DNA of 64,000 nt, taken from IMG/VR virus record IMGVR_UViG_3300035145_003993, positions 62,001 to 126,000 of that record, one strand, 5' to 3'. Both the position numbers and the translations under genes were made by a program. The notes below the pieces were generated by a model. It saw only the letters and a program-made list of their open reading frames with translations, did not search any database and was not told where the DNA came from. Every line of letters begins with the position of its first letter. The first letter of the stretch is position 1. This document shows positions 27,068-59,954 of the stretch, piece after piece.

Positions 27068-27679
27068 ATGGAAAACTCAACACTAATGCAACAATTGTTT
27101 CAAGATTACATTCAAAACGGTGGTCAACCTAAAATTACCAGTTTCCGTTTGCATCTTGAAAAGCTAATGAAAACAGAAATCAAGCCCCTTTGCGGAGGTT
27201 CAAGAAGACTTGCCCCAGGAGCTCATGATTGGAGAAACGAATTAAAAGATCGATTTGGAGGTCGAGGTAATAAATGGATGAAAGTTTCCATTGAGGAAAT
27301 TAATCCATCTCTCGATAAATTTGATGCTGAAGGTTATGATACAGAAGATTACCGATCTCATATCGAACGAGCCGGTTTCGCTTGGATTCGATATTATGGA
27401 CCAAAGCTTAATAATGGAATTAAGGTCGCGGCATTTACTGTTCATACATTTGATGCAACAATTTATCAGCCTCAAACTCAGCACTATATACCGGTTGATC
27501 GTTTGGATGAAACAATTGAACCATTAAATGGAACTCCATTCAGCCTAAAGCTTGAAGAAGCTGGATCGATCGTTCAAAATGATACTGATGATGAAGTTAC
27601 TCCTTTAGATGAGGAATCCGCGAACTTAAACGATGAAATCCTAAGTCAAATCCAAGATTTGGAACTAGAGGACCTCTAA
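27068..27679 (+). CDS. Early protein, paralogous family A (copy 1)
   Basis: FRLHLEK..KPLCG..WR..L..RF.GRG.KW..AWIRYYGP..LNGTPFSLKLE, acidic tail; AAAGGA SD. Confidence 0.85.
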   Translation: MENSTLMQQLFQDYIQNGGQPKITSFRLHLEKLMKTEIKPLCGGSRRLAPGAHDWRNELKDRFGGRGNKWMKVSIEEINPSLDKFDAEGYDTEDYRSHIERAGFAWIRYYGPKLNNGIKVAAFTVHTFDATIYQPQTQHYIPVDRLDETIEPLNGTPFSLKLEEAGSIVQNDTDDEVTPLDEESANLNDEILSQIQDLELEDL

Positions 27680-27935
27680 GATCACCGGGATAATATAAAC
27701 TCCCATGATGCCCGTATCGTTTGATTGAAGTCATAAATAAATCTGAACTGATAGTTTGGATGGTCAAACGATAAAACTTTACTTTGATTATTTGCTTATA
27801 ATATAAGTGTAATGATAAATGAATCGTTCAACATTTAAAATGATTGTTCGATCGATTAAGAACTTTTAGTGTAATTGATCGTTTGATTAATTATAATTTA
27901 TAATCTCAACTCATTCATTTAAGGAATCGTCGTTA

Positions 27936-28190
27936 ATGGAAGAATACTCAACCCCTCTATGTCTTATTACATCGTTCTTTTTGTCAATCTTCGCTTACAC
28001 TTCGTCTCAGTCAAACGAATTACCTATCCAGCATTTAGAGTTCGATGAAATGATCATTGAACCGAGTGAATCGATGAAACGATCAATACAGATAATCGAA
28101 TTCGACGATCATGTCATCGTTTCTAGGTCAATCGCTTTAGCTGACAAAAACGAAGATGACGATGAAGACGACGAAGATTATGGATGCTAA
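27936..28190 (+). CDS. Small secreted/membrane protein with acidic tail
   Basis: Hydrophobic N-terminus, repeated IQ..EFD motif; downstream of promoter 27869. Confidence 0.6.
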   Translation: MEEYSTPLCLITSFFLSIFAYTSSQSNELPIQHLEFDEMIIEPSESMKRSIQIIEFDDHVIVSRSIALADKNEDDDEDDEDYGC

Positions 28191-28336
28191 TATCTAGTCA
28201 ATCGTTATAAAAGTAATGCTTCAAGATTCAAACGACCAGCTTCATCACATTTTCTCTCAAGTGTAACTCATCGTTTTATGAAGTATAATATATCATAAGG
28301 TCCAACAAATTAATCAACCACCCAAAAGGATTTAAT

Positions 28337-28498
28337 ATGTACAAAGTAATTAATCAAGAACTAGAAAAGTTTGTTAAATCATTTAAAACTCGTCAAGAGG
28401 CTGAAGTTTATATCGCTCGACAAGGGAACAAGACTTACGAACTACTTGATCGTCAATACCCAGTTTATATCATCGCATCTTCATCACCTTCTAAATAA
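28337..28498 (+). CDS. 53-aa hypothetical early protein (not in the track)
   Basis: MYKVINQELEKFVKSFKTRQEAE...; AAAGGA SD after promoter 28261. Confidence 0.65.
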   Translation: MYKVINQELEKFVKSFKTRQEAEVYIARQGNKTYELLDRQYPVYIIASSSPSK

Positions 28499-28508
28499 GG
28501 ATAATGTC

Positions 28509-28766
28509 ATGGATTTTAATCAAGATACACTCAATGATCGTTTATATAAAGAACATCCAGAACTCAGCTCGAATTGGTCGTTTATGGATTGGGACGATGA
28601 CAAAGCAACGATAACATATCAATTCGATGATGGATCTGATGATGAGGTCTTCATTTATAAAGACGGATCGATTCATATTTCAGAAAAAACGATATACGAA
28701 ATGAATAAGATCTTAATGAATCAAGTTACATATCGATATTTCAATCATTCTGTATCATATCACTAG
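28509..28766 (+). CDS. Hypothetical early protein (start MDFNQD)
   Basis: AAGGA SD at 28497; C-terminal part of track ORF 28371-28766. Confidence 0.6.
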   Translation: MDFNQDTLNDRLYKEHPELSSNWSFMDWDDDKATITYQFDDGSDDEVFIYKDGSIHISEKTIYEMNKILMNQVTYRYFNHSVSYH

Positions 28767-28984
28767 TCTGGCTCATATCTTAAGTGTCTAGGTGTTACAG
28801 CATCCTCGATCGTCGGCTCTAGGTTAGGTGGTATATCCATCTATCCTTCTTAGAAAAGACTCGAAGCCAGATCAAGCTTCAAACGATGAAGTTATTTAAT
28901 CAAGTGTAACTCTCATTCGTATAGAGTATAATAAACCATAAGGCCGGCCTAATCAATCATCTATTCATCCAAAGGATTAACATC

Positions 28985-29251
28985 ATGAAAAAAATTACAA
29001 AAGATCAATTCTACAGACTAATCATGTCCTGTAACCCAGAACTTCATAAACTTCCTCAACACATCCAAGATGACATCTCCGATCTACGTAAAGTCACTAA
29101 GAATGGCAAAGCTCATCTACTTCTTACTCATCCAGAAGGCCAAGATAATTACTTCCTTGATTACGTCGAAGTAGATATGCTATGTGAAGAAGAAATTGAT
29201 GAAACTAGACTACATGCTAAAGAAAATAGAGGACGTCTTGTCGCCATTTAA
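28985..29251 (+). CDS. Hypothetical early protein
   Basis: Promoter 28904, AAAGGA SD. Confidence 0.7.
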   Translation: MKKITKDQFYRLIMSCNPELHKLPQHIQDDISDLRKVTKNGKAHLLLTHPEGQDNYFLDYVEVDMLCEEEIDETRLHAKENRGRLVAI

Positions 29252-29442
29252 TAAGTTTAATTAAACTTAAGATCCTACAAGTTACTAGTATATCTTATAT
29301 CTACTTTAATATTACCTTTTGAGTACTTCAAGATTCAAACGGCCAGTTTCATCACATAAGTGTAACTCTTAAATCCGAATGGTATAATATATCATAAGGT
29401 CCAATAAATCAATCAACCAATTAATCTACAAAGGATTTAAAT

Positions 29443-29637
29443 ATGAAAGTTCGAAAAAGAGCATCTCAAACAAATAATATCTCAGTTTGGGCAGAAGCTA
29501 ATAAAAAAGGTGGTTTCATTATTTACATGGGGATCAAAGGAACAGACGCTAAATCGATCGTTGGGGCCGCGGCATACAAAGAAACTCTCGAATATAATTT
29601 AAGAAAAGCTAAGTTCAAGCACGGAATCAAACTTTAA
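29443..29637 (+). CDS. Hypothetical early protein (basic)
   Basis: Promoter 29360, AAAGGA SD. Confidence 0.7.
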   Translation: MKVRKRASQTNNISVWAEANKKGGFIIYMGIKGTDAKSIVGAAAYKETLEYNLRKAKFKHGIKL

Positions 29638-29815
29638 GATAACAGATCGTTCGGTATACTTCTAACTTTAACCTCATCTTTAAAATGTCTAGATAAAACA
29701 TCGCTCGGCTTCATCACAAATTTCTCTTAAGTGTAACTCTTAAATCTGAATGGTATAATATATCATAAGGTCCAATTAATCAAACAAACCAATCAAATCA
29801 AAAAGGATTTAAAAC

Positions 29816-30454
29816 ATGAATAACTCAAACCTACAAACCTCTGAACAGGAGAACAGCATGTCTACAATTCAAAAACTTTTCCAAGAATATCTCGAATCAG
29901 GCGGTCAACCAAAACTTACAAGCTTCAGATTTCATATCGAAAAACTAATGAAGACCGATATAAAACCTTTATGCGGTCGATCTGGAAAGTCTTCATCAGG
30001 TAATGATTGGAGAAAAGATCTTATGAATCGATTTAAAGGTCGCGGATCAAAATGGGTCTTTGTAAGTCTCGAAGAAATTAAAGATACTCTCGATCGTTTT
30101 GACCAAGAAGGAATTGATACAGAAGATTACAGATCTTGGACTGAAAAGAAACAAAAAGCTTGGATTAGATTTTATGGTCCAAGGCTCGATAATGGAATCA
30201 AAGTCGCGGCATTTACAGTTCATACCCTAGATTCAACAATCTATCAGCCTCATACATTACATTATATTCCAATCGATCGTCTAGATGAAACAATTACTCC
30301 ATTAAACGGGACTCCCTTCAGTCTCAAGCTTGAAGTTGATGATGTCCAACAGGAAAATGATACTGAATCAAACGAAGAAATTATCGAATATATCTCTAAA
30401 TTTGATGAAGATCTCTTACAAGGACTCGAAGATTTACAGAACGATGATCTATAA
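29816..30454 (+). CDS. Early protein, paralogous family A (copy 2)
   Basis: Co-linear with 27068-27679, with long identical stretches (GIKVAAFTVHT, PLNGTPFSLKLE). Confidence 0.88.
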   Translation: MNNSNLQTSEQENSMSTIQKLFQEYLESGGQPKLTSFRFHIEKLMKTDIKPLCGRSGKSSSGNDWRKDLMNRFKGRGSKWVFVSLEEIKDTLDRFDQEGIDTEDYRSWTEKKQKAWIRFYGPRLDNGIKVAAFTVHTLDSTIYQPHTLHYIPIDRLDETITPLNGTPFSLKLEVDDVQQENDTESNEEIIEYISKFDEDLLQGLEDLQNDDL

Positions 30455-30660
30455 ATCTAATTAAATCTTAATCCAGATCTTAGAAATCATTCCTCGTTAG
30501 ATGCTTCAATACTACAAGTAATCGCTGCATCACACTCAAGATGTATATTTTGTCGATTGATGAAATATACAAGACAAACATACGATTAAATCAGTTTATA
30601 ACTTTTTTGAATTGTTATATGAACAATCATATTTCTCATAAAGTAAAGTCTGGAGCCAAA

Positions 30661-30825
30661 ATGGATATTGTATCGTTATCATTTCTTACTAAATCTATTG
30701 TACCAGTGTGTCTAATGATGATTCCTATCATGACAATTTCTGGAACAGGGCCCGTAAGGTCTCTAATGACGGGTCTATCGATCTACTTTGGATTTATTAT
30801 CCTTAACTCTTTACACGTAATTTAA
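30661..30825 (+). CDS. Small membrane protein (likely start 30661)
   Basis: GGAG SD before MDIVSL; two hydrophobic segments. Confidence 0.4.
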   Translation: MDIVSLSFLTKSIVPVCLMMIPIMTISGTGPVRSLMTGLSIYFGFIILNSLHVI

Positions 30826-30871
30826 ACTAAACGATCTACACTACAACATTATAATATTACAAGGAAAAAAC

Positions 30872-31102
30872 ATGTCTGAGACACCTTTAAAGTTTATTAA
30901 ATGCGCTACGATGAATTCTGGATCACCTGTCACTATTTCTTTTCAATCAGTTTCGCATGTCGTTAAAAACAAGTCTGCGCACGATGAAAATAGAAGTACA
31001 ACTTGGATAAACTTCCATTCAGGTAAATCAATTCATGTAGACACTCCGTACGAAAAAGCTGAGTTATTATTTACTAGATTTTTAAATGAGACTTCAATTT
31101 AA
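30872..31102 (+). CDS. Small protein, family B (FlbD-like pattern)
   Basis: VSH..NK..HD..TWINFHSGKSIHV; paralogue of 31820-32047. Confidence 0.7.
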   Translation: MSETPLKFIKCATMNSGSPVTISFQSVSHVVKNKSAHDENRSTTWINFHSGKSIHVDTPYEKAELLFTRFLNETSI

Positions 31103-31251
31103 TTAACTTATCTAAATCAATCTGTGAAAGTGCCTTGCCCAGTTTATAACTCGCATCATCAAAAATGAAAGTGTAACTATTATTTATTTTGAGTATAATA
31201 TATCATAATCCAATTCAAATCAACCACTAACTAAAATAAAAAAGGATTAAA

Positions 31252-31416
31252 ATGAGTTCCAAACAAAAACAACAATTCCTAGATTCAATTAATGAACTTG
31301 TAAAACGATCAAACGAAGAGTATAAGAAAGGAAATATAAAAGAAGCCAAGCGTTTATCAAGGGACGCAAATCAATTAAACCTTCACTTTAAATCTATGCT
31401 TAATGAAATGATCTAA
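31252..31416 (+). CDS. 54-aa helical hypothetical protein
   Basis: Promoter 31171, AAAGGA SD; MSSKQKQQFLDS... Confidence 0.6.
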   Translation: MSSKQKQQFLDSINELVKRSNEEYKKGNIKEAKRLSRDANQLNLHFKSMLNEMI

Positions 31417-31544
31417 TGACAAAACCCAATAAGAAATTAAAAGAATTAAACCACGAGATTCAATCTGAAAGAAGATTGAAAGGTTTAACTGGTAGGCTTG
31501 AAGATTTAATTAGACAAAGAAATCTTCTTCTTGCAAAGAAATAG
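31416..31544 (+). CDS. 42-aa basic peptide
   Basis: TAATG coupling with the upstream ORF. Confidence 0.45.
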   Translation: MTKPNKKLKELNHEIQSERRLKGLTGRLEDLIRQRNLLLAKK

Positions 31545-31662
31545 ATTTTATATTAATGAAAGTTTTAAAATATTATTTTTGTGTAATTAATTAAAACCAT
31601 TGTTATAATATACCATAATCCAATTCAAATCAAACAACCACCAAAAAAAAGGATTTAAAATT

Positions 31663-31815
31663 ATGCCTCTATTATTATTATCTGCACTTATTATTTACGG
31701 ATTAATTTCTTTTGCAGTTGGTTTAATAATACTACATCCTGTTCCAACATTGTTCGCAACAGCTTTATTCATTACTTTTAACTTTATCAATACTTTAATC
31801 CTTAGAAAGGTCTAA
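31663..31815 (+). CDS. 50-aa membrane peptide
   Basis: Promoter 31581, AAAGGA SD; entirely hydrophobic. Confidence 0.55.
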   Translation: MPLLLLSALIIYGLISFAVGLIILHPVPTLFATALFITFNFINTLILRKV

Positions 31816-31819
31816 TCTT

Positions 31820-32047
31820 ATGACAACAACAGCACTCAGAACTTACACAACAGTTAATTCATCATCAGAAATCACAGTCGCTCTAAATTCAGTATCTCAT
31901 ATTATTGAAAATAAAAACCCTCATGATGATACTTCATTAGATCAAAGAACATCGTGGATTCATTTCCATTCAGGAAAGTCAGTTCATGTAAGTGAATCAT
32001 TCGAAAACGTCAATGATGACTTAGTAGAGTTTTATAAAACTCGCTAA
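31820..32047 (+). CDS. Small protein, family B (copy 2)
   Basis: VSHII.NK.PHD..TSWIHFHSGKSVHV. Confidence 0.7.
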   Translation: MTTTALRTYTTVNSSSEITVALNSVSHIIENKNPHDDTSLDQRTSWIHFHSGKSVHVSESFENVNDDLVEFYKTR

Positions 32048-32059
32048 CAAGGAATATTA

Positions 32060-32239
32060 ATGGTAAGAAAATTATTTGATGCTTCTCTCTTTTTTATAAT
32101 GTTTGCTTTAGCTTTTTTAGCTTTTATTAATCTTCTAGAGCAATATCCAACCTTTACGTATTCTGTAATTGCTATTTTTACTCTTGCAGAAGCTTATGAT
32201 CGATCTCTTCCAAAATACAAACAATACTTGAAACGTTAA
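32060..32239 (+). CDS. 59-aa membrane peptide
   Basis: AAGGA SD; two TM-like segments. Confidence 0.5.
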   Translation: MVRKLFDASLFFIMFALAFLAFINLLEQYPTFTYSVIAIFTLAEAYDRSLPKYKQYLKR

Positions 32240-32247
32240 GGAATAAA

Positions 32248-32538
32248 ATGACTGTATCTAATAGAATTAAAATCGAATGGGAATTTGATATATCAGTAAA
32301 TGAAGAATTACAAAATCGTCTAAACTTATCTGAAGGGCAGATATATGAAATGCTTGAAGACGAAGACGAAGAATCAAGACTACATAGTTTATGTTGTGGA
32401 GAAACAGGAACTCCAGAATGGATAGATCTAGATCTTTTCTTTGAAGACCCTCGAAGTATAAGTGAAGATGAAATTACAGAAACTTTATCTGATGATTATG
32501 GTTGGCTGATTAAATCATGGGAATGGCAATATGTGTAA
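32248..32538 (+). CDS. Acidic hypothetical protein
   Basis: IKIEWEFD...LSDDYGWLI; the stop codon lies in the next promoter's -35 box. Confidence 0.7.
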   Translation: MTVSNRIKIEWEFDISVNEELQNRLNLSEGQIYEMLEDEDEESRLHSLCCGETGTPEWIDLDLFFEDPRSISEDEITETLSDDYGWLIKSWEWQYV

Positions 32539-32656
32539 CCTTAATTAATTTAGCGTATAATGTCTCATAAGGGGAATTTAGAATGAAACTTATTTTTATG
32601 TTACTACTACTTTATATTATCTTCCATGCCAACACACCAAGAAAAAGGAAATAACA

Positions 32657-33168: not shown

Positions 33169-33177
33169 TACTCTTAA

Positions 33178-45036: not shown

Positions 45037-46215
45037 ATGGATATTTCAAACTATCAATCAGAATATAATAATCTTGTAACTTTTGTTGATCTTATTGTTA
45101 ATAAAGGTAAAATAAAAAACAATAAAGATAAAAAAGAAAAATGGGCTTCGTTTAAAAAAGAAAACGAATCTGAAATTAGGGATCTCCTTAATATTCCTAA
45201 TGAATTAAAAGATAATCCTTGTAATCTTGTCAGTTTCGATATTGATGAAGAAAAAAACTTATTATTATTAAACTATACTTCACAAGCTCATAATGTTCTC
45301 CATGTTTATAAAAATGGATGGTCAAATGAACTTAAACTTTGTAGAGGGTTAGTTTTTTCTATTAAAAATAAAATTAAGTTAGTAAGTAGAGGATTTGAAA
45401 AATTCTTTAACGCTAACGAAACTAAAAAATCTCTTCAAGAAGAATTAACAAGAACTTACGATAAAGATCAATTATTCGATGCTTATGAAAAAATAGATGG
45501 TCACATGATAGAGTTTTTTGAACACGAAAATAAAATGTGTGCTACTACTCGAGGAAAATTTAATACTATATCTTCAAAAGAATCATTAAGTTTAATTTCG
45601 TATGAAGAATGGAATCAATGTAAAGATTATTTATTATCTAAGTATAATATAAACTTAATGACTATTGTAGCAGAATTAGTTACTCCATTTTCAAAAGTCT
45701 TAGTTGATTATTTCAATGATGAATGTGTTTACATATTAGCATCATACGACAATAAAGGAAATAAAATCAGTTATGACCTTTTAAAAGAAATATCAAGTTT
45801 TATTAATAAATCTAAATTACCAGAAAAGAGAAGATACACACTTTCAGAAATGTTTAAAGAAGTTACAAGAAGAGATATTAATAACCATGAAGGATGGGTT
45901 CTTAATCTCGATGGTGTCTTACTTAAATTCAAGTATAACAATTATATTGGAATGATGGTTAGTAATAAGATGTGTTATAAATATCTTATGCAAACTATGA
46001 TTAATAAAACAACTAATAAAATGGTTTCTACTTTAGACAAAGAATCTATAAAAGAAGTTGAATTACTTCTTAATAATATTGATCTTAAGATTACTGAATG
46101 TAAAACTATTTCTACTTATAAACCTTTATATGAATTATGGTCTGATGAGGAAGGAAGCTTAAACTACTTCAGATTGGTCTGTCGGAAATTTTACAAAAAC
46201 CTAATTAATGTGTAA
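45037..46215 (+). CDS. RNA ligase, T4 Rnl1-like
   Basis: LLLNY..CRGLVF..VSRGFEKFFN; motif I YEKIDG; AEL; motif IV EGWV; motif V LKFK. Confidence 0.88.
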   Translation: MDISNYQSEYNNLVTFVDLIVNKGKIKNNKDKKEKWASFKKENESEIRDLLNIPNELKDNPCNLVSFDIDEEKNLLLLNYTSQAHNVLHVYKNGWSNELKLCRGLVFSIKNKIKLVSRGFEKFFNANETKKSLQEELTRTYDKDQLFDAYEKIDGHMIEFFEHENKMCATTRGKFNTISSKESLSLISYEEWNQCKDYLLSKYNINLMTIVAELVTPFSKVLVDYFNDECVYILASYDNKGNKISYDLLKEISSFINKSKLPEKRRYTLSEMFKEVTRRDINNHEGWVLNLDGVLLKFKYNNYIGMMVSNKMCYKYLMQTMINKTTNKMVSTLDKESIKEVELLLNNIDLKITECKTISTYKPLYELWSDEEGSLNYFRLVCRKFYKNLINV

Positions 46216-46294: not shown

Positions 46295-46990
46295 ATGAAT
46301 AAAGGCTTTCAATATGAAAAAACGATTTTATCGTTAATGAAAACAAACGGCTACGTTTCTGAAGAATTCTTGACTCAAGAATCAGCAGGAAGTGATAGTA
46401 CAAAACCTGATCTTGTTTTGAATTTAAACGGAAAAGATCTTAATATTGAACTTAAAGAAAGCATCAAATCACAAGCTGGTGGAACAAGTATTAGATATAC
46501 AAATGGTTTGTTTGAATTGGTAAAAGACATTGATGGTATAGATAAACAAGATATCTACGACTTACTTTGTAATAATAAAAATCACTTTGATAACATATTA
46601 GATTTTCATCAAGCTAATAATATACCTTTTTCAACTAGTAAGAAAAAATGGTTGGAATCTGTTGAAAGAGGTCTCTTAAAAAAGACAAATTTCAAAATCG
46701 ATTGTAAACCATCTTTTATAGAAAATCATTATACTAATAAAAATACTTATTACATCAATATAGGTAAAAAAGGTCTTTATTATATGAAAGAAGATATTGC
46801 AAATCTTGGAGTTCCAAGATTTAAAGCTAAAATTGACTTAGAAATAAGATTAACTAGAAACGGGTCTAAGTTAAACTCTAAAGGCGAAAGAGTATGTTCT
46901 TCATCATTAAGAATTCAATCAAGAATTAAAAAACTAGAAAAAAGCCCGTTTAGTCTTGAAAATATCGATTCAATGTTAAGATTTAAATAA
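46295..46990 (+). CDS. PD-(D/E)xK restriction-endonuclease-like protein
   Basis: KPDLVL...NIELK; YYINIGKKGLY. Confidence 0.7.
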   Translation: MNKGFQYEKTILSLMKTNGYVSEEFLTQESAGSDSTKPDLVLNLNGKDLNIELKESIKSQAGGTSIRYTNGLFELVKDIDGIDKQDIYDLLCNNKNHFDNILDFHQANNIPFSTSKKKWLESVERGLLKKTNFKIDCKPSFIENHYTNKNTYYINIGKKGLYYMKEDIANLGVPRFKAKIDLEIRLTRNGSKLNSKGERVCSSSLRIQSRIKKLEKSPFSLENIDSMLRFK

Positions 46991-47076
46991 ATGTTCAAAA
47001 AGTTTAAAGTGCATCTTTTCTTTTTAAATAATATAATAAATCATAATTTCAATCCTATCATTTAAAGGAATTTCTT

Positions 47077-47814
47077 ATGAATGACAATAATTTAAAATCA
47101 AATCTCATTTCAGCATTAACTGAATATTTTAATGAAAACAAACAAGGATATACTAGTTTTCGATTTCATATTGATTCAATTTTAAAAGAACACATTAAGC
47201 CATTAACTTCTAGATCTATGAACTCTTCTAAGTCAAAAAACAGTGGTTGGAGACAAGATCTTATGGATAGATTTAAAGGAAGAGGTTCTAAATGGGTTTT
47301 TGTTTCTCTTAAAGAAATTGAACCAACTTTAAAGAAATTAGAAGATCAAGGAATTAATTGTCAAGATTATAGAAAAAACATTGAGCGATTAAATAAAGCT
47401 TGGATTAGATTTATGGGTCCAAGAATTATTAATGGAACACCTCATGCATCTTTTGAAGTTCGAACTCAAGGCTCAACAATTTATCACCCTCATCAATTAC
47501 ATTATATTTCTTTAGAAAACATTAAAGTTGATTCTGAAGAGTCTTATATCACATTAATGAAATCTACACCAAAAGCTTTAAAATTAGAAGAAGATTTTAA
47601 ATCTAATCCTAAATCTTTAGAAGAAACAAAAGAAAAAGTTAAAAAAATGAGAAATAAAAAAGAAAAGAAAATTTCTCAAAAAGAAAATGTTGTTGTAGAC
47701 AATGAAAATGTAGAAATAAACCTATCTGATATTCCTAGTAGTAATAATCCCGATGATTGGGAAGCTTTCCTTTCTGCTGAAGGATTAGTTGATTTTGATG
47801 ATCTAGACTTATAA
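47077..47814 (+). CDS. Early protein family A (copy 3)
   Basis: FRFHID..IKPL..WRQDLMDRFKGRGSKWVFVSL..AWIRFMGP..TPKALKLE. Confidence 0.85.
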   Translation: MNDNNLKSNLISALTEYFNENKQGYTSFRFHIDSILKEHIKPLTSRSMNSSKSKNSGWRQDLMDRFKGRGSKWVFVSLKEIEPTLKKLEDQGINCQDYRKNIERLNKAWIRFMGPRIINGTPHASFEVRTQGSTIYHPHQLHYISLENIKVDSEESYITLMKSTPKALKLEEDFKSNPKSLEETKEKVKKMRNKKEKKISQKENVVVDNENVEINLSDIPSSNNPDDWEAFLSAEGLVDFDDLDL

Positions 47815-51361: not shown

Positions 51362-51443
51362 AATTTATTATACATAGTTTATTTCTTTGATAAAATAAAA
51401 TTAGAGCTTCTTATGATAAAAAAATATTTTAAGAAGTTCATTT

Positions 51444-51516
51444 GGGCTTTTAGTGTAATGGTTAGCACGTCACTCTCATAAAGTGTTTAGTCTGGGTTCA
51501 AATCCCAGGGAGCCTA
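51444..51516 (+). tRNA. tRNA with CAT anticodon (Ile2 or elongator Met)
   Basis: Acceptor GGGCTTT/GGAGCCT; D stem GTGT/GCAC; loop CTCATAA; T arm CTGGG-TTCAAAT-CCCAG. Confidence 0.85.
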
Positions 51517-51542
51517 TTTATTAAATTTTTTAAGAGTTTAAA

Positions 51543-51931: not shown

Positions 51932-53230
51932 ATGTTAAATAAAAATAACTTAGACTTTAAGATCAAAAACATAGATTTAGCTTCTTGGGGAAGAAACGAA
52001 GTAATACTTGCAGAAAAAGATATGCCAGGATTAATGTCTTTAAGAGAAAGATATGGAAAAACAAAACCCTTAACAGGAGCAAGAATTACTGGGTGTCTTC
52101 ATATGACAATCCAGACTGCAGTATTAATTGATACACTAATTGAATTAGGTGCTCAAGTTAGATGGATGACTTGCAACATTTTCAGTACACAAGATCACGC
52201 TGCAGCTTATATTGCAAGTAAAGGTATTCCTGTTTTTGCTTGGAAAGGAATGACTGAAGATGAATATGAAGAATGTTTAAATGATGTTTTATGGTTTGAC
52301 GATCAAGGGCCAAATATGATTTTAGACGATGGAGGAGATCTTACTAAATTTATAATAGAAAATCATTCTGATCTAATACCTAACATTAGAGGGGTCTCAG
52401 AAGAAACAACTACAGGGGTACTTCGTCTTAGAGAATTTGAAGAACAATTAAAACTTCCTTTTCCTGCGATTAATGTTAATGATTCTGTTACAAAATCTAA
52501 ATTTGATAATAAGTACGGTTGCAAAGAAAGTTGTGTTGATGCAATTAGAAGAGCAACAGATACAATGATGGCAGGAAAAGTTGCAACAGTTGCTGGTTAT
52601 GGTGATGTTGGAAAAGGATCAGCAGCATCATTAGCAGCTGCTGGATGTAGAGTTATTGTAACTGAAATTGATCCTATTTGTGCTTTACAAGCTGTTATGG
52701 ATGGATTTAAGGTAACTACAATGGAAGAAGCTGTTGTTGAATCTGACATAATCGTAACAGCTACCGGTAACTATAACGTTGTTAATAGTCATCACTTTAA
52801 TCAAATGAAAGACAATGTGATTGTTTGTAATATTGGACACTTCGATAATGAAATTGACGTTAAATGGTTAATAGAAAATGCTGAAGAAACAAATATTAAA
52901 CCTCAAGTTGATCTTTATAATTTAGATGGAAAATCAGTTATATTATTAGCTAAAGGTAGACTTGTTAATTTAGGTTGTGCAACAGGACATCCAAGTTTTG
53001 TAATGTCAGCTTCATTTACAAATCAAGTCCTTGCTCAAATTGAACTTTGGACGAAATCTTCTTTTTACGAGAATAAAGTTTATGTTCTTCCTAAAATCTT
53101 AGATGAAGAAGTTGCTCGACTACATTTAGAAAAAGTTGGTGCAAAACTTGATATATTAAGTGAAAATCAAGCTGATTATATTAATGTAGAAATAGATGGT
53201 CCTTTTAAAAATAAAGATTATAGATATTAA
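51932..53230 (+). CDS. ahcY: S-adenosyl-L-homocysteine hydrolase
   Basis: [13 protein letters not shown]; [12 protein letters not shown]; LDDGGD; EETTTGV; [12 protein letters not shown]; GYGDVGKG; NIGHFD; [18 protein letters not shown]; C-terminal YRY. Confidence 0.97.
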
Positions 53231-53302
53231 ATAAAAAAATTATACAATTATTAATATAGTCATATAATAAAAATAGATTAATTAATTTTAATCTAAAAAC
53301 AA

Positions 53303-53375
53303 GCTGGTGTAGCTCAATTGGCAGAGCAGCTGATTTGTAATCAGCAGGTTAAGGGTTCAAATCCCCTCACCAGCT
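53303..53375 (+). tRNA. tRNA-Thr(TGT)
   Basis: GCTGGTG/CACCAGC; anticodon arm GCTGA-TTTGTAA-TCAGC; GGTTCAAATCC. Confidence 0.95.
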
Positions 53376-53423
53376 TTCCCGTAATTAAACAATTACAGAC
53401 ACAGACACAGAAAGGAGTTTGAT

Positions 53424-53804: not shown

Positions 53805-53833
53805 TTATGTCACCATGATCATGGTGTCACTTT

Positions 53834-53905
53834 GGGATATTAGCTCAATGGTAGAGCAGTGGACTTTTAATCCATTGGTTGTAGGTTCGAGTCCTACATG
53901 TCCCA
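53834..53905 (+). tRNA. tRNA-Lys(TTT)
   Basis: GGGATAT/ATGTCCC; GTGGA-CTTTTAA-TCCAT; GTAGG-TTCGAGT-CCTAC. Confidence 0.95.
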
Positions 53906-53909
53906 TTCA

Positions 53910-53942
53910 GCATCCTTAGCTCAGTAGGAAGAGCAGTATACT
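53910..53942 (+). pseudogene. Orphan tRNA 5' half (acceptor strand, D arm, 5' anticodon strand to U33)
   Basis: GCATCCT-TA-GCTC-AGTAGGAA-GAGC-A-GTATA-CT; positions 34-36 coincide with the endonuclease stop codon. Confidence 0.75.
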
Positions 53943-54785
53943 TTACATATCAGAAAGATATTTTTTAACTAGTCTTCTTACATGAGTATGACTTATATCT
54001 AGATCTCTAGCAGCTTTAGAAACCCAACCCCAACACTTTTCAGTGTTTTTAATGTGATTTAATCTTGATTTAAGAAGGCTTTTAGCTTTTTCTTCTTTGA
54101 TTTTTAAATCATTTTTTCTTTTCGCTTTTCTTCTTTCAGACTTGTTTTTTCGCAATTCAAAGTCTATTTTAAAATTATCAAACTTATTCTTTCTTATTCT
54201 TTCAATTAAATTAGATAAAAAAGCATCATCGTAAACTTTTGAGTAATGAATCTCATACAACACCCAACCTTGTTCTTTAATTAAATCGTGCCTTTCTTGA
54301 TAATACTTTTTAAGAGACTTATCTTTATTGTAATGTTGCTCACCATTTACTTCTATTCCAAACATGACTTCAGGTATTGCAATATCAATAGAGAAAAATC
54401 TGTTTTCTAACGGCTGATATTCTTCAATGAAATCTATATTTTTTTTCTTAAGAAATTTCTTTAATTTTTCGCAAGGAATAGAATTAAATTTGTTTTTTGA
54501 ACGCCAAGGATGATTATCTGGATTTTCCTTAAGATACTTTTTTCTACTGTTAGATATTTTTTGTTTAAACTCTTTGGTATATACTCCTTTGTTAAAACAT
54601 TCTCGAGAGCAGTATTTTCTAACTGAGTTGGTTCTTGTATTTTTTATTGAAGTATTACAAGTCTTACAGAAAGAATCTTCAATGACTTTTTTATTTCCAC
54701 ACCATCTTTTATGATTGCCTGCTTCTTTTTTAGGTATCTCTTTTTCACATTTTTTACAATACATATTTATCCTTGGCTTGAACAT
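53943..54785 (-). CDS. Free-standing Vsr/DUF559-like (homing-type) endonuclease with N-terminal Zn-finger motifs
   Basis: CKKC..H..WC; CKTC..KYCSREC; SIDIAIP..GIEVNGEQHY..ERHD..QGWVLYEIHY. Confidence 0.8.
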   Translation of the reverse strand: MFKPRINMYCKKCEKEIPKKEAGNHKRWCGNKKVIEDSFCKTCNTSIKNTRTNSVRKYCSRECFNKGVYTKEFKQKISNSRKKYLKENPDNHPWRSKNKFNSIPCEKLKKFLKKKNIDFIEEYQPLENRFFSIDIAIPEVMFGIEVNGEQHYNKDKSLKKYYQERHDLIKEQGWVLYEIHYSKVYDDAFLSNLIERIRKNKFDNFKIDFELRKNKSERRKAKRKNDLKIKEEKAKSLLKSRLNHIKNTEKCWGWVSKAARDLDISHTHVRRLVKKYLSDM

Positions 54786-54861
54786 ATAATAAATATGATT
54801 AGATCAATGCTAATGCAAAATTAATTTAACAATAAATAAAAAAATAATAATATAATCGTAT

Positions 54862-54948
54862 GCCTTCTGCATCCCCACTGGTCTTCTAAGCCGGCCTCAT
54901 CAATCTAGGGGAATTGGAGAGTGTGAGGTTCGAATCCTCCAGGAGGTG
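54862..54948 (+). ncRNA. D-armless tRNA-like element with an Arg(TCT)-type anticodon loop and a possible 8/4 fold
   Basis: GCCTTCTG/CAGGAGGT 8-bp stem; CTGGT-CTTCTAA-GCCGG; long variable arm; GAGG-TTCGAAT-CCTC T arm; only 8 nt where the D arm should be. Confidence 0.55.
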
Positions 54949-54950
54949 CT

Positions 54951-54988
54951 TAAGCCCAAGAGTTCTGGTTCGAGTCCAGATAGGCGTA
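54951..54988 (+). pseudogene. Orphan tRNA 3' half B
   Basis: TAA-GCCCA-AGAGT-TCTGG-TTCGAGT-CCAGA-TAGGCGT-A. Confidence 0.7.
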
Positions 54989-55019
54989 TTGGTCGTAGGT
55001 TCAAATCCTACCGGGTGTA
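54985..55019 (+). pseudogene. Orphan tRNA 3' half C
   Basis: CGTAT-TGGTC-GTAGG-TTCAAAT-CCTAC-CGGGTGT-A. Confidence 0.7.
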
Positions 55020-55167
55020 CTACAAATACTTATATTCACGCAATCATATAAAAATTGGTGGCCTGATTTATTTAAATAGAAATTAAAATATTTTAAGTGT
55101 AATTCAAAATAAATTTTGATATAAATCTTATATACTTTAAAATAATTCAAAATAAATAGGATAAAAA

Positions 55168-55557
55168 ATGAAATTTTTAATTGACGAAGACGTATTATTT
55201 TCAACATCACCTCAAGAATTAAATGTAATTAAAAATAATCTAAGAAAAATTTTTTTAGAAATTCATGAAATAAAAAAGTGGAAATGGGAATTTTCTAAAG
55301 AAACAATTCAAGTTTGTATTAGAGATGGAAAATCATATCAAGACAATTCGGAACATTCAAAACCTACACTTTGGATTGCTTTAATTTGGGCTAATAGGAA
55401 AGGATCAACAAGATCTCCTGAAGAAGATAGAGAAATTTTTATTTCGAAAAGTACTATGTCTAAACCTTATTCTGAACAGAATGTATATACGTATCATTCT
55501 TATTCTGATTTGTTACAAAAATATAATTCAGGTAATTTAAATTTAATTATCAGATAA
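55168..55557 (+). CDS. Hypothetical protein
   Basis: Promoter 55097, AGGA SD. Confidence 0.6.
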   Translation: MKFLIDEDVLFSTSPQELNVIKNNLRKIFLEIHEIKKWKWEFSKETIQVCIRDGKSYQDNSEHSKPTLWIALIWANRKGSTRSPEEDREIFISKSTMSKPYSEQNVYTYHSYSDLLQKYNSGNLNLIIR

Positions 55558-55587
55558 ATATTTATCATATAAACAAGGAATATATTT

Positions 55588-55842
55588 ATGATAAATGAAG
55601 AACTAAATAAATCTGATCTTAGAAAAATAAAATCTTTAATTAGACAAGAAATTAAGGATTTCGAAAAAGAAACCTTAGAAAAAAAAGTAAAATATATAAT
55701 TAAAAAAGATTTTAAAAATATTGAAAATATAGATAAAGATTTTGATAAAAAAGTAGAAGAAATTACAAAAGACGTTATGCAAGCTTTTCATGATCTTCTT
55801 TACAAAGAAAAATATATTTTAAAAACAAAAGTTAAAAAATAA
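55588..55842 (+). CDS. Helical hypothetical protein with an INEE..IKSLIRQEI leader-like start
   Basis: AAGGA SD; resembles the ITE..LRSLIRQ leaders. Confidence 0.6.
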   Translation: MINEELNKSDLRKIKSLIRQEIKDFEKETLEKKVKYIIKKDFKNIENIDKDFDKKVEEITKDVMQAFHDLLYKEKYILKTKVKK

Positions 55843-56001
55843 AAAAGTGTAATTAGATATAATTCATATTATAATGACACATAATTTAACTCTGTTTATA
55901 ATTTATTAATTGATACATTGAAATCTATTAATTAAAATAAAAATCATTAACAGATCTTATTTAGATGTTATTTTGATTTTAAAAGTTAAAAGGAGTTTTT
56001 A

Positions 56002-56181
56002 ATGTCTAAAAGTAAAAAAACAGAAGAAAAATTATATAAATGCCTACATTGTAAAAAAAAATTAGTTTCTTTTCATTTTCATGTTTGTAGCAAATCCCAT
56101 CAAGAATATTTTGGTTGCAAATTTTGTGATGACTGGTGTATAAAGTGTAAAAAAGATTGGAATGACTGTAATGAAACTTAA
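56002..56181 (+). CDS. 59-aa Cys/His-rich Zn-finger protein (not in the track)
   Basis: AAAGGAG SD; CLHC..HVC..H..CKFCDDWCIKC. Confidence 0.6.
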   Translation: MSKSKKTEEKLYKCLHCKKKLVSFHFHVCSKSHQEYFGCKFCDDWCIKCKKDWNDCNET

Positions 56182-56404
56182 TAAGATATTTTTTGACGGA
56201 AAAGGCTACTTAAGAAAATGTATAGAATTAGAAGAATATCTTGATGATGAATTATTTAAAATTTGTTCAAGATTTAATTTTATTCCAATTGATAGTATAT
56301 CATTTGAGAAATATCAACCACAAACTTATTGTGATATTGTAATAAATGGATATCACATTGAATCTGTAAGTATAGAGCATCTTTATACACAAATACCACA
56401 ATAA
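56162..56404 (+). CDS. Hypothetical protein
   Basis: 80-aa ORF. Confidence 0.5.
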   Translation: MTVMKLNKIFFDGKGYLRKCIELEEYLDDELFKICSRFNFIPIDSISFEKYQPQTYCDIVINGYHIESVSIEHLYTQIPQ

Positions 56405-56430
56405 ACTCTTAAATAGTAAAGATTTTAAAA

Positions 56431-56670
56431 ATGAAAAATTCAGAAATTAAAAAGTTCTTCAAGAATATTAAAAACTTAAATTTAAGTAATATTGAAAAAA
56501 ACAAAATGATGGAAATGATGCAAGTTAGAGGTATAAATAAAATAAATAAAAAAATGTCTTATAGTAATTTAAAAAGTATCTTAAACAAAAAGAATGGAAA
56601 AATTACTAATTTAGTTTTAGGACCTGAATGGTCGAAATTAATTTTTGTAGATATAAACATAGAAATATAA
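56431..56670 (+). CDS. Basic hypothetical protein
   Basis: 79-aa ORF. Confidence 0.45.
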   Translation: MKNSEIKKFFKNIKNLNLSNIEKNKMMEMMQVRGINKINKKMSYSNLKSILNKKNGKITNLVLGPEWSKLIFVDINIEI

Positions 56671-56673
56671 AAT

Positions 56674-56934
56674 ATGGATAATAAAGAAATAATAGAAGTC
56701 TTAAAAGAAGATATTCATAATAATGCTTTTGTAATTTTTTGTGTTAGTGAAGATGGATCTGTAACAATGATTACAACAGGTGATATAAGTAAAATACAAA
56801 AAGATATATGCTCTAATATGATAATTGTATCAGGTGATCACTCAATAATTTTATCTTCTGTTCTTTTCTTAGAAAGAACATTCGAAAATATCATGTATAA
56901 ATTTAAAGTATTTTTCGAAAGAATTTTCAAATGA
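56674..56934 (+). CDS. Hypothetical protein
   Basis: 86-aa ORF. Confidence 0.5.
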   Translation: MDNKEIIEVLKEDIHNNAFVIFCVSEDGSVTMITTGDISKIQKDICSNMIIVSGDHSIILSSVLFLERTFENIMYKFKVFFERIFK

Positions 56935-57024
56935 AATACTTTAAAAGTGTAATTTTGTAATATAAGTTGTATAATATATCATACCAAAAAACAATAACCT
57001 TAATTATATTATTAGGAAATAAAT

Positions 57025-57591
57025 ATGGGTAATAAAGCTTTTAAAAGATACATTAGAGAAAGGTATCAAGGAAGAGGTAATTCTTGGGTAAGAATTGAAA
57101 AAGATAGTGAAACATATGAAAAAATTATTAATCATCTAAAAGATTTAAATTTAAACTTAGAAAACTGTGATTATATAAAACATATAACAAGAGAAGGTTT
57201 TGCTTGGATACGATTTTCAAAACCTGAAGGGACGCAAGAAGAACCTATTTCAAGATTTGAAGTTAGATATAAATCTTCAAAAATTGATCAACCAGAATCT
57301 TTTCTTTTAATCGATGATAATACAGCAAAGAATTTTAAACTATTAGGCAATACTCCTTTAAAGCTTCAACTAGAAATTGATCCTAAGAATAGAAAACAAA
57401 AAGATAATCTTGTAAATAGTATTAAAAATCTTAAAAAGAAATCTTCAAATAATATTAATCAAGATAATTTTGAATCTTATGAAGAAGTTAAAATTATTAA
57501 GGAAAGGCCTTTAACTAAACCTTCTAATAGAGAACTTGAAGAATGGTATGAATTCTTAAAGATAAATAATCTATATGAAGAAAATGTGTAA
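57025..57591 (+). CDS. Early protein family A (copy 4, N-terminally shorter)
   Basis: RERYQGRGNSWVRI..FAWIRFSKP..FEVR..KIDQP..LGNTPLKLQLE; ends in the next -35 box. Confidence 0.8.
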   Translation: MGNKAFKRYIRERYQGRGNSWVRIEKDSETYEKIINHLKDLNLNLENCDYIKHITREGFAWIRFSKPEGTQEEPISRFEVRYKSSKIDQPESFLLIDDNTAKNFKLLGNTPLKLQLEIDPKNRKQKDNLVNSIKNLKKKSSNNINQDNFESYEEVKIIKERPLTKPSNRELEEWYEFLKINNLYEENV

Positions 57592-57774
57592 CAAATAAAA
57601 ATTTAAAGTATAATCATTCATGATAGATTTAATTTTAATATCTTTTTTCGTTTTAGTCTTTAGTTTTCTTCACAGTTTTTATAACAACAGAAAAAGATCA
57701 GACTTTTATTTTATTTTTGTTTTAACAGAAATATCAATTATATACAGTTACTTATACTATATTGGGAGGATTTA

Positions 57775-58110
57775 ATGAGAATTAAATGGATTGAAGTTAA
57801 AAATGGAGATGCTGTTTATTTCAAAGAAAAAACAGGTTCTGGTTCTGTAGTAAAAACTAAAAATCATGGTAGATATTTTATGCCAGCAAAAATTGGAATG
57901 AGAATTAAAGGAGAAATTAATCCAATCGAAAAGCACGAAAGGTTTATTTTTCAAAATTCAAAAGTTCAAATGGTAGATGGATCTTCTCGCATAGTTAAAT
58001 GTTTTTTAATTAGAGTTTCTGATAATTCAAACTTAGCTATCAGTGAACAGCAACTAATGCAATATTTTTATAAAAAAGATGAAAGTAGTTTAAGTGGATA
58101 TGATTGTTAA
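57775..58110 (+). CDS. Hypothetical protein
   Basis: GGGAGG SD. Confidence 0.6.
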   Translation: MRIKWIEVKNGDAVYFKEKTGSGSVVKTKNHGRYFMPAKIGMRIKGEINPIEKHERFIFQNSKVQMVDGSSRIVKCFLIRVSDNSNLAISEQQLMQYFYKKDESSLSGYDC

Positions 58111-58327
58111 TAGTAGACCAAAAAAATCAAAAATAGAAATTGATTTAAAAGGACCAAATGGTAATGCTTTTATATTACTTGGATTAGTTGAATCTTTAGG
58201 GAAACAATTAAGTTTTCCAAAAGAAGTTATTAGTGATATAAAAAAAGTTATGATGATGGGATCGTATGAAGATTTAATTAAAACTTTTGATATTTGGTTT
58301 GGTGATCATGTCATACTCTATAGATGA
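58094..58327 (+). CDS. Conserved phage-type hypothetical protein
   Basis: IDLKGPNGNAFILLG..MM.GSYEDLI..F. Confidence 0.65.
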   Translation: MDMIVNSRPKKSKIEIDLKGPNGNAFILLGLVESLGKQLSFPKEVISDIKKVMMMGSYEDLIKTFDIWFGDHVILYR

Positions 58328-58580
58328 TATTAAATTAGGTGATATGCTTTGGGTTGAGTTAAAAGGTCCAGACCAGAACTATGGTTATGGTGAAGTTATT
58401 AATATTTGGAAAGATTCAGACACAGGATATGAATTTTTTGATTTTCATTGTTTAATTAACGGAGGACAAAGGTCTGGTAGGATTGATTTAATAATAGAAA
58501 AACCGACTGCTAGAATGACATCTAAACTTTTGCAATCAAGAAAAGAATTTAACGAGATTATGAAAGAAAAAAATAGATAA
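58308..58580 (+). CDS. SH3/KOW-like hypothetical protein
   Basis: IKLGDMLWVE..GYGEV. Confidence 0.55.
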   Translation: MSYSIDDIKLGDMLWVELKGPDQNYGYGEVINIWKDSDTGYEFFDFHCLINGGQRSGRIDLIIEKPTARMTSKLLQSRKEFNEIMKEKNR

Positions 58581-58595
58581 AGCGTTTAAATAAAA

Positions 58596-58811
58596 ATGAA
58601 TAATATATCTGTTGGTGATTTAATAAAATATAAATCTTATGTATATCCAAAAGGATTAATTTGTCTAGTTGTAAAATTAGATAGAATATATAATATCCCA
58701 ACAAAAAACTATTTCGAGCAATATACTCTTTATTGTTCAAATACTAAACATAAATTTAGAATATGGAATAGTACATGCAAAAATTCATCAAGTCTAGAAA
58801 AGGTAAATTAA
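58596..58811 (+). CDS. SH3/KOW-like small protein
   Basis: ISVGDLIKY..GLICLVV. Confidence 0.5.
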   Translation: MNNISVGDLIKYKSYVYPKGLICLVVKLDRIYNIPTKNYFEQYTLYCSNTKHKFRIWNSTCKNSSSLEKVN

Positions 58812-58812
58812 T

Positions 58813-59097
58813 ATGTCAAATAAATTAAATTGTTCTTCATGTAAAGCTGGAATTCTCTGTCAATGTAAAACTAAACAAAAGAAAAAAAGAGAAAACGTAA
58901 ATCATCCAGATCACTATTTGAGAAACAGTGGTCATGAGGTAATTGATGTAATAGGAGCTTGGAATTTAAATTTTGAATTAGGAAACGCTGTTAAGTATAT
59001 TGCAAGAGCAGGAAAAAAAGATTCTAATAAAGTAATTGAAGATTTAGAAAAATCAATTTGGTATATTAAAAGACAAATAGAAAATATTTCTAAATAA
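58813..59097 (+). CDS. DUF3310 family protein
   Basis: VNHPDHY..EVIDVI..FELGNAVKYIARAGKK..EDLEKSIWYI. Confidence 0.88.
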   Translation: MSNKLNCSSCKAGILCQCKTKQKKKRENVNHPDHYLRNSGHEVIDVIGAWNLNFELGNAVKYIARAGKKDSNKVIEDLEKSIWYIKRQIENISK

Positions 59098-59148
59098 TTT
59101 ATATTTTAATCATTAACGCTATATATAAAAAAAACATTAGGAGTATTA

Positions 59149-59364
59149 ATGATTAAAATTAGAAAAATAGTTTGGGACTTTAGTGATACTGAGTTTGAAG
59201 ATTGTGACTATGAAGAAGCAAGAAAAATTGCTGTTCTTCCTAAAAGTCTTAAAATAAACGAAGACGATCTTGACTCAGATGCGGAAGAAGAAGATATTAT
59301 CTTTTATCTTGAAGAAAATTATAATTTCTCTGTAAAGGAAATAAAAACTGATTTGGACGACTAA
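59149..59364 (+). CDS. Acidic hypothetical protein
   Basis: AGGAG SD; KIVWDF pattern. Confidence 0.6.
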   Translation: MIKIRKIVWDFSDTEFEDCDYEEARKIAVLPKSLKINEDDLDSDAEEEDIIFYLEENYNFSVKEIKTDLDD

Positions 59365-59411
59365 AGTGTAATTAAAAAATTTATCGATTATAATATATTA
59401 TAGGAGATAAA

Positions 59412-59954
59412 ATGAAAGATCAAATAAAATTAAAATTTTCTGGTGTAAAACATAAATGGATTTATTATCACACAGATTCTAAAACTTTTAATTTAATAGT
59501 CAACAAAATTTCAGATAAAGTTCATACTAACGAAATTGATAGTAAATCAGCTATTAATCTTGTAAAATGCTTTAAAAAACAAGAAAAAGTTTTTTTGAAA
59601 TTTATTAAAACTATTGGAAGAAAAAATTTTTCTTGTCTATGCTATTTAATAGACAAAGATAATAATAAAATTCATATTAATCTTGATCCAAAAACACTTC
59701 TTGACTCAAATATATTAAATGGGACTCCTAAATCTCTTAGACTTTATAAAGTTGAAAAGGATAAACATAAATGGAAAAAACCTAATGATGGATTTGATGA
59801 TCCTGTTTCATATCCTCCAGTTGAAGAAGAATTAACAGAATTAGGATATAGTATGTATAAAGATTGGTCTCAAGAAGTTGCATTATCTGGATTAACTTCA
59901 AAGCAATATTATAGAAAACTTTTAGGAATTGACAAATATTATAAGAAGGATTAA
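59412..59954 (+). CDS. Hypothetical protein, possible distant family A member
   Basis: KFSGVKHKW and LNGTPKSLRL echo RFGGRGNKW and LNGTPFSLKL; promoter 59366. Confidence 0.6.
   Translation: MKDQIKLKFSGVKHKWIYYHTDSKTFNLIVNKISDKVHTNEIDSKSAINLVKCFKKQEKVFLKFIKTIGRKNFSCLCYLIDKDNNKIHINLDPKTLLDSNILNGTPKSLRLYKVEKDKHKWKKPNDGFDDPVSYPPVEEELTELGYSMYKDWSQEVALSGLTSKQYYRKLLGIDKYYKKD

Follow-up and report, generated by a model that had tools for sequence, protein, structure and literature searches.

We analysed a stretch of 64,000 nucleotides (nt), here called the window, which comprises bases 62001-126000 of the IMG/VR virus record IMGVR_UViG_3300035145_003993 (211,364 bp, estimated to be 84% complete; G000 below), and in particular a family of small proteins encoded in its right-hand part. 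The window is low in G+C (0.21-0.37). Left of about 26 kb its genes lie mostly on the minus strand and include those for large virion-type proteins, a PhoH-PIN fusion and a helicase, while from position 27068 onwards there is a long series of small plus-strand genes, broken by an Rnl1-type RNA ligase, an S-adenosylhomocysteine hydrolase and three tRNA genes. Five of the plus-strand genes encode the family members that are the subject of this report.

Copy 1 (long type A1; 27068-27679, 203 residues) comes first after the strand switch. Its predicted layout is an N-terminal helical hairpin, a core barrel at about residues 52-164 and an acidic tail (net charge -13) ending in ...DLELEDL. Copy 2 (long type A2; 29816-30454, 212 residues) likewise has a hairpin, a core at about residues 61-175 and an acidic tail (-13), here ending in ...DLQNDDL. 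In copy 3 (type B; 47077-47814, 245 residues) the hairpin and the core (about residues 54-173) are followed by a Lys-rich linker, a D-W-E-A-F-L-x-x-E-G-L helix and an acidic tip, ...DFDDLDL. Copy 4 (short type C; 57025-57591, 188 residues), by far the commonest type in metagenomes, begins directly with the core (residues 1-120), which leads through a disordered linker into a C-terminal helix with the pattern E-L-x-x-W-x-x-F-L-K-x-N-N-L. Copy 5 (divergent short type E; 59412-59954, 180 residues) has a basic core (+13) and a basic tail end; it has lost the GRG and AWIR motifs of the other copies and kept G.TP.SL.L.

A first-pass annotation, made from the letters of the window alone, had grouped the genes starting at 27068, 29816, 47077 and 57025 as homologues, and this grouping holds far beyond chance. 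When copy 2 was searched against its own genome with tblastn, it retrieved copy 1 at 60% identity (E 4e-80), copy 3 at 47% (E 1.1e-48) and copy 4 at 27% (E 2.7e-8). The gene at 59412, which the same annotation had listed as a possible distant fifth member, does not reach significance when the profile is made from the other four copies alone (E 0.16). Deeper profiles do recover it. Against a profile of 119 relatives that excluded its own clade, copy 5 is the fifth-best open reading frame (ORF) of the 211-kb genome (E 9.4e-5), and hhalign gives it a probability of 77% (E 1.9e-5). Moreover, a profile of a sixth family type, built from other phages only (see below), recovers all five window copies, with copy 5 at E 2.2e-6 and the next unrelated ORF at 0.18. 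Because the relatives' profile and the sixth-type profile both recover it, we consider copy 5 to be a true, divergent member. Profile searches found no sixth family copy in the 211-kb genome.

The motifs that had first drawn attention to these genes are a property of the family as a whole: in alignments of 122-124 relatives, the positions R..GRG..W, W.R, P and L..TP..L.LE are near-invariant, corresponding in the numbering of copy 4 to R13, G16, R17, G18, W21, W61, R63, P90, L107, T110, P111, L116 and E117. The charge pattern is less uniform. Counted over N-terminal part, core and tail, the net charges are +3/-5/-13 in copy 1, +2/-2/-13 in copy 2, +2/+4/-5 in copy 3, 0/+2/+2 in copy 4 and 0/+13/-1 in copy 5. 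The acidic tails that the first-pass annotation had ascribed to the family are thus found in copies 1-3 and not in copies 4 and 5, and of its more specific formula, a basic core plus an acidic tail, the tail half again applies to copies 1-3 while the basic core fits copy 5 alone. Among relatives, the tails of long-type members also combine an acidic run with a hydrophobic tip, for example ...DDDDLIG, ...LDLDDLI, ...NDDIF, ...NDDMF and ...DNLDF.

AlphaFold2 models based on a 124-sequence alignment are confident, with a mean predicted local distance difference test (pLDDT) score of 80.9 for copy 3 and 82.8 for copy 4, and of 90-97 within the core of both. In these models the core, of about 115 residues, consists of a short helix carrying R-Y/F-x-G-R-G, a first strand (W-V-x-V), two helices and four further strands (A-W-I-R-F..., F-E-V-R... 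and two more), and it closes with an extended G-T-P-x-x-L-x-L-E segment. We call the modelled fold a small SH3/Tudor-like barrel that has a two-helix insert, and claim no family membership for it. The long types are predicted to add the N-terminal helical hairpin, while types B, C and E add, past a disordered linker, an amphipathic C-terminal helix of the form E-L-x-x-W-x-x-F-L-x-x-x-G/N-L.

Neither sequence nor structure searches connected the family with anything described, in agreement with the earlier statement that no known family could be recognised; profile searches and structure prediction matched no housekeeping or structural family. Against Pfam-A, the five proteins gave nothing better than E 0.07, the ten longest relatives gave no match, and 122 cores searched at E up to 10 gave no consistent family (at most nine members per model, best E 0.033). 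The best PHROGs match was to an unnamed PHROG (E 0.045, one protein), with no structural PHROG matched, and the defence and anti-defence profiles of PADLOC-DB gave chance-level matches only (E 0.011 or weaker). Searches of 50,697 GenBank phage records by blastn and tblastn with the region, copy 2 and copy 4 returned no match. Foldseek found nothing at E 0.001 or better for either model in the PDB or in BFVD, and shape and feature searches of the ESM Atlas, where the models of family proteins are poor, yielded nothing usable. A literature search found nothing on the family. Two apparent matches were rejected. A profile match among PDB sequences to designer PPR repeats proved to be an artefact of summing over a 27-residue helix, with no single stretch passing, and chance-level matches to papain-like proteases (cathepsin B, C39, calpain) were set aside, as the family has no conserved Cys or His. 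The sequence family is thus new to every library searched, and its domain is without a convincing structural relative.

A separate structure search, in which the typical best Z-score is 7-8 even for models without true matches, returned neighbours below that level. The best neighbour of both models was DUF1653 (PF07866; PDB 3be3, chain B), at Z 5.9 with a root-mean-square deviation of 3.8 over 71 residues and at Z 4.5 over 65 residues, which is below the informative level; VapX followed at Z 4.8. DUF1653 may share with the modelled core the topology of a small five-stranded barrel. It differs in that the family core, about double its length, has the two-helix insert after strand 1 and before strand 2, and the DUF1653 Pfam model matched none of 122 members at E up to 10. 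In 306 Bacteroidota genomes, DUF1653 was not found. DUF1653 is, moreover, itself a barrel of unknown function. Weaker neighbours (Z 3-4.5) were SH3b, CAP-Gly, the Mfd RID, CarD/CdnL, the UvrD/PcrA Tudor domain, Hfq, WYL and KOW barrels, many of which bind nucleic acid or RNA polymerase. The N-domain of CarD/CdnL, the Mfd RID, the UvrD/PcrA Tudor domain and the Sm/Hfq, WYL and KOW barrels belong to the same general class of small barrels as the family core. At the same time, they share no sequence similarity with it and score in the range of unrelated barrels, and the set of Arg/Trp motifs is the family's own.

A word search retrieved 214 family proteins, all of them from marine metagenomes, without names and on contigs of up to 256 kb. 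When the core profile was run exhaustively against 1.84 billion cluster representatives (cut-off E up to 1e-3), it gave 160 clusters at 50% identity, again all metagenomic. Judging from these hits, the family is small and confined to one group of phages, a clade of uncultivated marine jumbo phages. Its members fall into the long types A1 and A2 (copies 1 and 2), type B (copy 3), the short type C (copy 4), type E (copy 5) and a sixth type, whose gene stands between those for C and E in other relatives and is absent from both G000 and the relative G001. Sixth-type proteins have about 204-214 residues and a tail containing ...FGIQTLEDILGEE..., and are encoded for example at 2491-3135 of locus L008 and 12552-13166 of locus L005, as well as at 12 other loci; in the window, five unrelated small ORFs (57775-59364) occupy the corresponding position.

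The most informative relative is G001 (IMGVR_UViG_3300033183_000491), which is complete at 239,550 bp. Its gene order is that of the window, namely the strand switch, A1, A2, the RNA ligase, a 232-residue gene, B, the S-adenosylhomocysteine hydrolase, C and E, and two genome fragments (G004 and G005) also carry five family copies each. Between G000 and G001, the orthologues of copies 1-5 are 66, 70, 53, 52 and 73% identical, which places the family above the median of the block, where small genes are mostly 30-60% identical and typically about 48%. In addition, a natural variant of copy 1 that is about 95% identical and was assembled from RNA reads differs by 14 synonymous and 5 nonsynonymous changes. 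By these comparisons the paralogues are ancient, positionally fixed and under purifying selection, which argues against the first-pass suggestion that they had diversified against different host alleles: recent diversification of that kind is disfavoured because the copies are old positional orthologues (52-73% identity) with an excess of synonymous change. In six more distant loci (L035, L028, L032, L027, L030 and L034) a long-type member is again the first plus-strand gene, separated from the run of minus-strand genes by a non-coding gap of 0.6-1.3 kb. With G000 and G001, this makes the first position in the block a conserved feature of the family. A direct terminal repeat in G001, which would have placed the block at the genome end, was dropped from consideration; it is only 141 bp long and is probably an overlap from circular assembly.

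In the window the junction itself is sharply defined, and copy 1 is, as first noted, the first gene after it: the last minus-strand gene starts at 25951 and the first plus-strand gene at 27068. Each of the five genes also has, as had been claimed, its own promoter-like cassette upstream (AAGTG(T/C)A..-N-TATAAT), the common element being AAGTG(T/C)AA, about 17 nt, and TATAATA(T/A)A(T/C)CATA. Copy 1 is preceded by three tandem cassettes on the plus strand (26690-26721, 26831-26862 and 26961-26992), which read AAGTGTAAC-N-TATAAT/TATTAT, the first two followed by AAACCATAAGG and the third by AACCATAAGG; both the tandem cassettes and the TATAATAAACCATAAGG leader are kept in G001. The plus-strand cassettes of copies 2, 3, 4 and 5 lie at 29729-29762, 47007-47038, 56945-56978 and 59364-59397, respectively. 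The cassette of copy 2 is nearly identical to another at 29358-29391, the likeness extending over more than 34 nt.

A search of the window for the pattern AAGTG-N18-24-TAWWATA gave 18 matches, where 2.0 would be expected. The cassette is not specific to the family, being found also 5' of about 13 other genes of the block. Genome-wide, 18 of 24 cassettes lie on the plus strand at 26690-59364 of the window, and the remaining six are all on the minus strand; because of this concentration we regard the cassette as the mark of a 33-kb transcriptional block rather than of the family as such. In the form AAGTGTAA-N-TATAATA.A.CATAAGG it marks the transcriptional regime of the plus-strand block (26690-59397). 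With 33 kb of small genes and 18 cassettes the block looks early, as the first-pass annotation had it. The family proteins would then be made at the very start of infection, which we infer because the genes have their own cassettes and a long-type copy heads the block. The cassettes may be read either by the host housekeeping sigma factor, which would make them early, or by a phage sigma factor.

The junction (25952-27067) comprises 1.1 kb of non-coding DNA with blocks strongly conserved in G001, namely 48 nt at about 26281-26328 centred on TCCGGA, 21 nt at about 26465-26485 and a G+C-rich, hairpin-prone stretch at about 26553-26620. The junction may serve in protein binding, as an origin or in packaging. 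To its left lie six minus-strand genes (21810-22790, 22884-23237, 23372-23917, 24041-24886, 24883-25380 and 25490-25951) whose products have common N-terminal peptides, either M(K/R)ITE(S/N)(K/R)LR..IR..I.E(S/N) or MN.KE(W/Y)..L(I/V)E.W...L.ES. By their sequence, these peptides look like propeptides of internal or ejected proteins, of the kind that target to the capsid or are cleaved off by a protease.

Sequence nearly identical to that of the window is present in DNA and RNA runs, all from marine or seawater metagenomes. Copy 1 and copy 2 are both covered by RNA contigs that match the window at 90-95% identity and come from three metatranscriptome runs of a single marine sample. Those over copy 1 start at 26740, 26850 or 26919 and end at 27683, 27762 or 28292, and those over copy 2 span 29754-30511 and 29754-31450. 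The stretch 26500-26740 is in none of the RNA contigs and is covered by a DNA run of another study. Contig ends fall on the repeated cassette and were not used as evidence for transcription starts. These data support the view that copies 1 and 2 of a related strain are transcribed in the natural environment, and have no bearing on the timing.

Some relatives carry the core in other protein contexts. One of them (P0129) has two tandem cores behind an N-terminal peptide, MILKESDLRHLVRGILVES, that resembles the common N-terminal motif of the minus-strand genes beside the junction. In three others (P0022, P0140 and P0142) a long-type family protein is fused at its N-terminal side to a homologue of the product of a 96-residue acidic ORF of the window (32248-32538, plus strand; phmmer E 1e-15 to 4e-11), and a homologue of this ORF lies directly 3' of a family gene in G001, L039 and L038, which makes the ORF a candidate functional partner. 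The natural fusions, both the tandem double core and the fusion with the 96-residue ORF, show at the level of predicted proteins that the family is modular. A predicted complex of copy 2 with the product of the 96-residue ORF scored 0.24 against a mark of 0.32, which speaks neither for nor against binding. The same ORF bears a weak and unconfirmed resemblance to a 71-residue ORF at 59149-59364, just 5' of copy 5.

The five genes, then, are members of a real, lineage-specific multigene family of a marine jumbo phage clade. As to what the proteins do, the explanation that we favour, tentatively and with a probability of roughly 0.4, is that they are modular early adaptor proteins with a common ligand. 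The Arg/Trp face of the barrel (R-x-x-G-R-G-x-x-W and A-W-I-R-F) would bind one ligand common to the paralogues, which we propose because a small barrel carries the cluster of invariant Arg and Trp residues. If Tudor, Sm, KOW and WYL barrels are a guide, the most plausible candidates for this ligand are nucleic acid and other surfaces that are acidic or rich in phosphate. The differing tails, which resemble short docking or self-inhibiting motifs, would either bind back onto the core or engage different partner proteins, and five paralogues would in this way link one binding activity to several takeover targets, in transcription or DNA metabolism. Nucleic-acid binding or mimicry, proposed in the first-pass annotation on the grounds of charge, is possible.

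Several observations sit uneasily with such adaptors. In copies 1 and 2, the most acidic paralogues, the core itself has a negative net charge (-5 and -2), which would not be expected of a simple nucleic-acid binder, and the fifth paralogue is without the Arg/Trp motifs altogether. Since all structural matches have Z below 6, the predicted fold class carries no functional weight. The ligand, the partner and the activity are all ones that we infer, and the sole complex prediction (copy 2 with the 96-residue ORF) came out without a verdict. The early timing can also be questioned: a TATAAT-type cassette is unlike the housekeeping promoter of Bacteroidota, and if the host belongs to that phylum, the cassettes might be read by a phage sigma factor and at a later stage. 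An extended form of the adaptor model, in which the five or six paralogues assemble with each other or on a nucleic-acid ligand into a takeover machine of novel barrels with interchangeable docking tails, made first or packaged and injected, essential at the start of infection and widespread in the clade, seems to us quite unlikely.

The alternatives that we considered overlap in part with the adaptor model. Position and acidity of the long types bring to mind gene 0.3 of phage T7, the first early gene of that phage, which follows three tandem early promoters and encodes the very acidic protein Ocr. Copy 1 too is the first gene of an early-looking block, behind three tandem promoter-like cassettes; a long-type copy keeps this first position in distant relatives, and the product is very acidic (net charge about -15, and about -13 for copy 2). 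The acidic long types might accordingly act as decoys, functional analogues of Ocr that mimic DNA, or in some other way block restriction or another defence, ahead of any attack on the genome, with the remaining paralogues covering other defences. Ocr, however, is an all-helical, rigid and uniformly acidic body that mimics bent DNA, while the family proteins are predicted to be a beta barrel with disordered tails and not a rigid DNA-shaped helical body, most of their acidity comes from the tails of copies 1-3, copies 4 and 5 range from neutral to basic, and no homology to Ocr is seen. Unlike many anti-defence genes, moreover, the family is among the better-conserved genes of the block and under purifying selection, and it has no PADLOC or anti-defence homology. 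On balance, we see an anti-defence decoy as conceivable and on the unlikely side.

A second possibility is that the proteins are takeover factors directed at RNA polymerase, the barrel docking on the host enzyme and the tails recruiting or blocking factors, so that transcription is redirected to phage promoters. Such a function would fit with several of the weak structural neighbours, which include the Mfd RID, CarD/CdnL, the C-terminal domain of UvrD (bound to the RNA polymerase lobe), the PcrA Tudor domain and the NusG/Spt5 KOW domain, and with a sigma-70-family factor encoded by the phage outside the window (G000:C1:147310-147513, minus strand), so that host core polymerase is apparently used. 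At the same time, Z-scores of 3-4.5 are what any small barrel would give. For the CarD_TRCF or Tudor-like domains that interact with RNA polymerase, the structural scores are only Z 3.2-4.2 with no Pfam match, and neither CarD_TRCF nor KOW is matched in sequence. Five to six conserved paralogues for a single target would also be unusual, and we think a polymerase-directed role unlikely.

The acidic tips offer a third explanation, that of mimicry of a single-strand-binding protein. A T4 gp32-like single-strand-binding protein is encoded elsewhere in the genome (genome positions 194162-194686, minus strand; matched by PF08804), and its end, ...LDDAFADLDSL, is similar in style to the tails of copies 1-3. 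Tips ending in L, I or F, such as ...DLELEDL, ...DLQNDDL, ...DFDDLDL, ...DDDDLIG, ...NDDIF and ...NDDMF, might copy the docking tip of the gp32-like protein or of host SSB and compete for, or recruit, replication and repair enzymes. Family tails share with those of T4 gp32 and bacterial SSB a disordered, acidic character and a hydrophobic end. They differ from these proteins in the core, which lacks the OB fold and is not recognised by PF00436 or PF08804, and the phage already has its gp32-like gene. The likeness of the tips is short, of low complexity and without statistical support, we treat it as a lead, and such tails are found in three of the five paralogues; no gp45-type clamp was detected in the phage genome. 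Tail mimicry of this kind we rate as very unlikely. A related idea, that the family is itself the replicative SSB, was dropped, since the gp32-like gene lies elsewhere in the genome and the proteins match neither Pfam model; a bacterial-type SSB (PF00436) was not detected in G000 or G001. The reading of the C-terminal motifs as clamp-binding was likewise dropped, no gp45-type clamp having been found.

Least probable of all, and by a long way improbable, is that the proteins are structural or are packaged in the virion and injected rather than expressed early, an idea suggested by the tandem cores of P0129 behind MILKESDLRHLVRGILVES, which is like the possible capsid-targeting or cleaved propeptides of the minus-strand junction genes, and contradicted by the absence of that peptide from all five window copies, by their location in the small-gene block with promoters of their own and not among structural genes, and by the lack of any structural PHROG match.

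Marine jumbo phages are abundant and almost none has been cultivated, and the family offers a well-defined handle on their early programme. A confidently modelled domain without a library match is, moreover, a good target for structure determination and for ligand and partner screens. Should the core turn out to bind nucleic acid, or a central machine of the host, the few phage takeover modules now known would be joined by a new domain family, and if the proteins instead act against defence, they would form an unusual set, conserved and with multiple paralogues. Unannotated early-gene families are common in phages, and no new kind of mechanism is evident here yet.

Other genes of the window give some context to the phage. 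The PIN-PhoH fusion protein is encoded on the minus strand at 9374-10714. No close phage was found in GenBank, and the window helicase is at most 33% identical to those of jumbo phages such as Bacillus phage G. In the plus-strand block, the T4 Rnl1-type RNA ligase (45037-46215) is followed by a gene for a 231-residue protein (46295-46990), and this pair lies directly 5' of copy 3 in the window and in G001. Three tRNA genes are found inside the small-gene block, all on the plus strand: Met-CAT (51443-51517), Thr-TGT (53302-53376) and Lys-TTT (53833-53906). The S-adenosyl-L-homocysteine hydrolase (51932-53230, plus strand) shares 85% identity with its counterpart in G001. Its best bacterial homologues, at 65-71% identity, are nearly all from Bacteroidota (Saprospiraceae, Flavobacteriales and Cytophagales). 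The host is possibly a member of Bacteroidota, and the sequence affinity of the hydrolase hints at this phylum and at manipulation of the methyl cycle.

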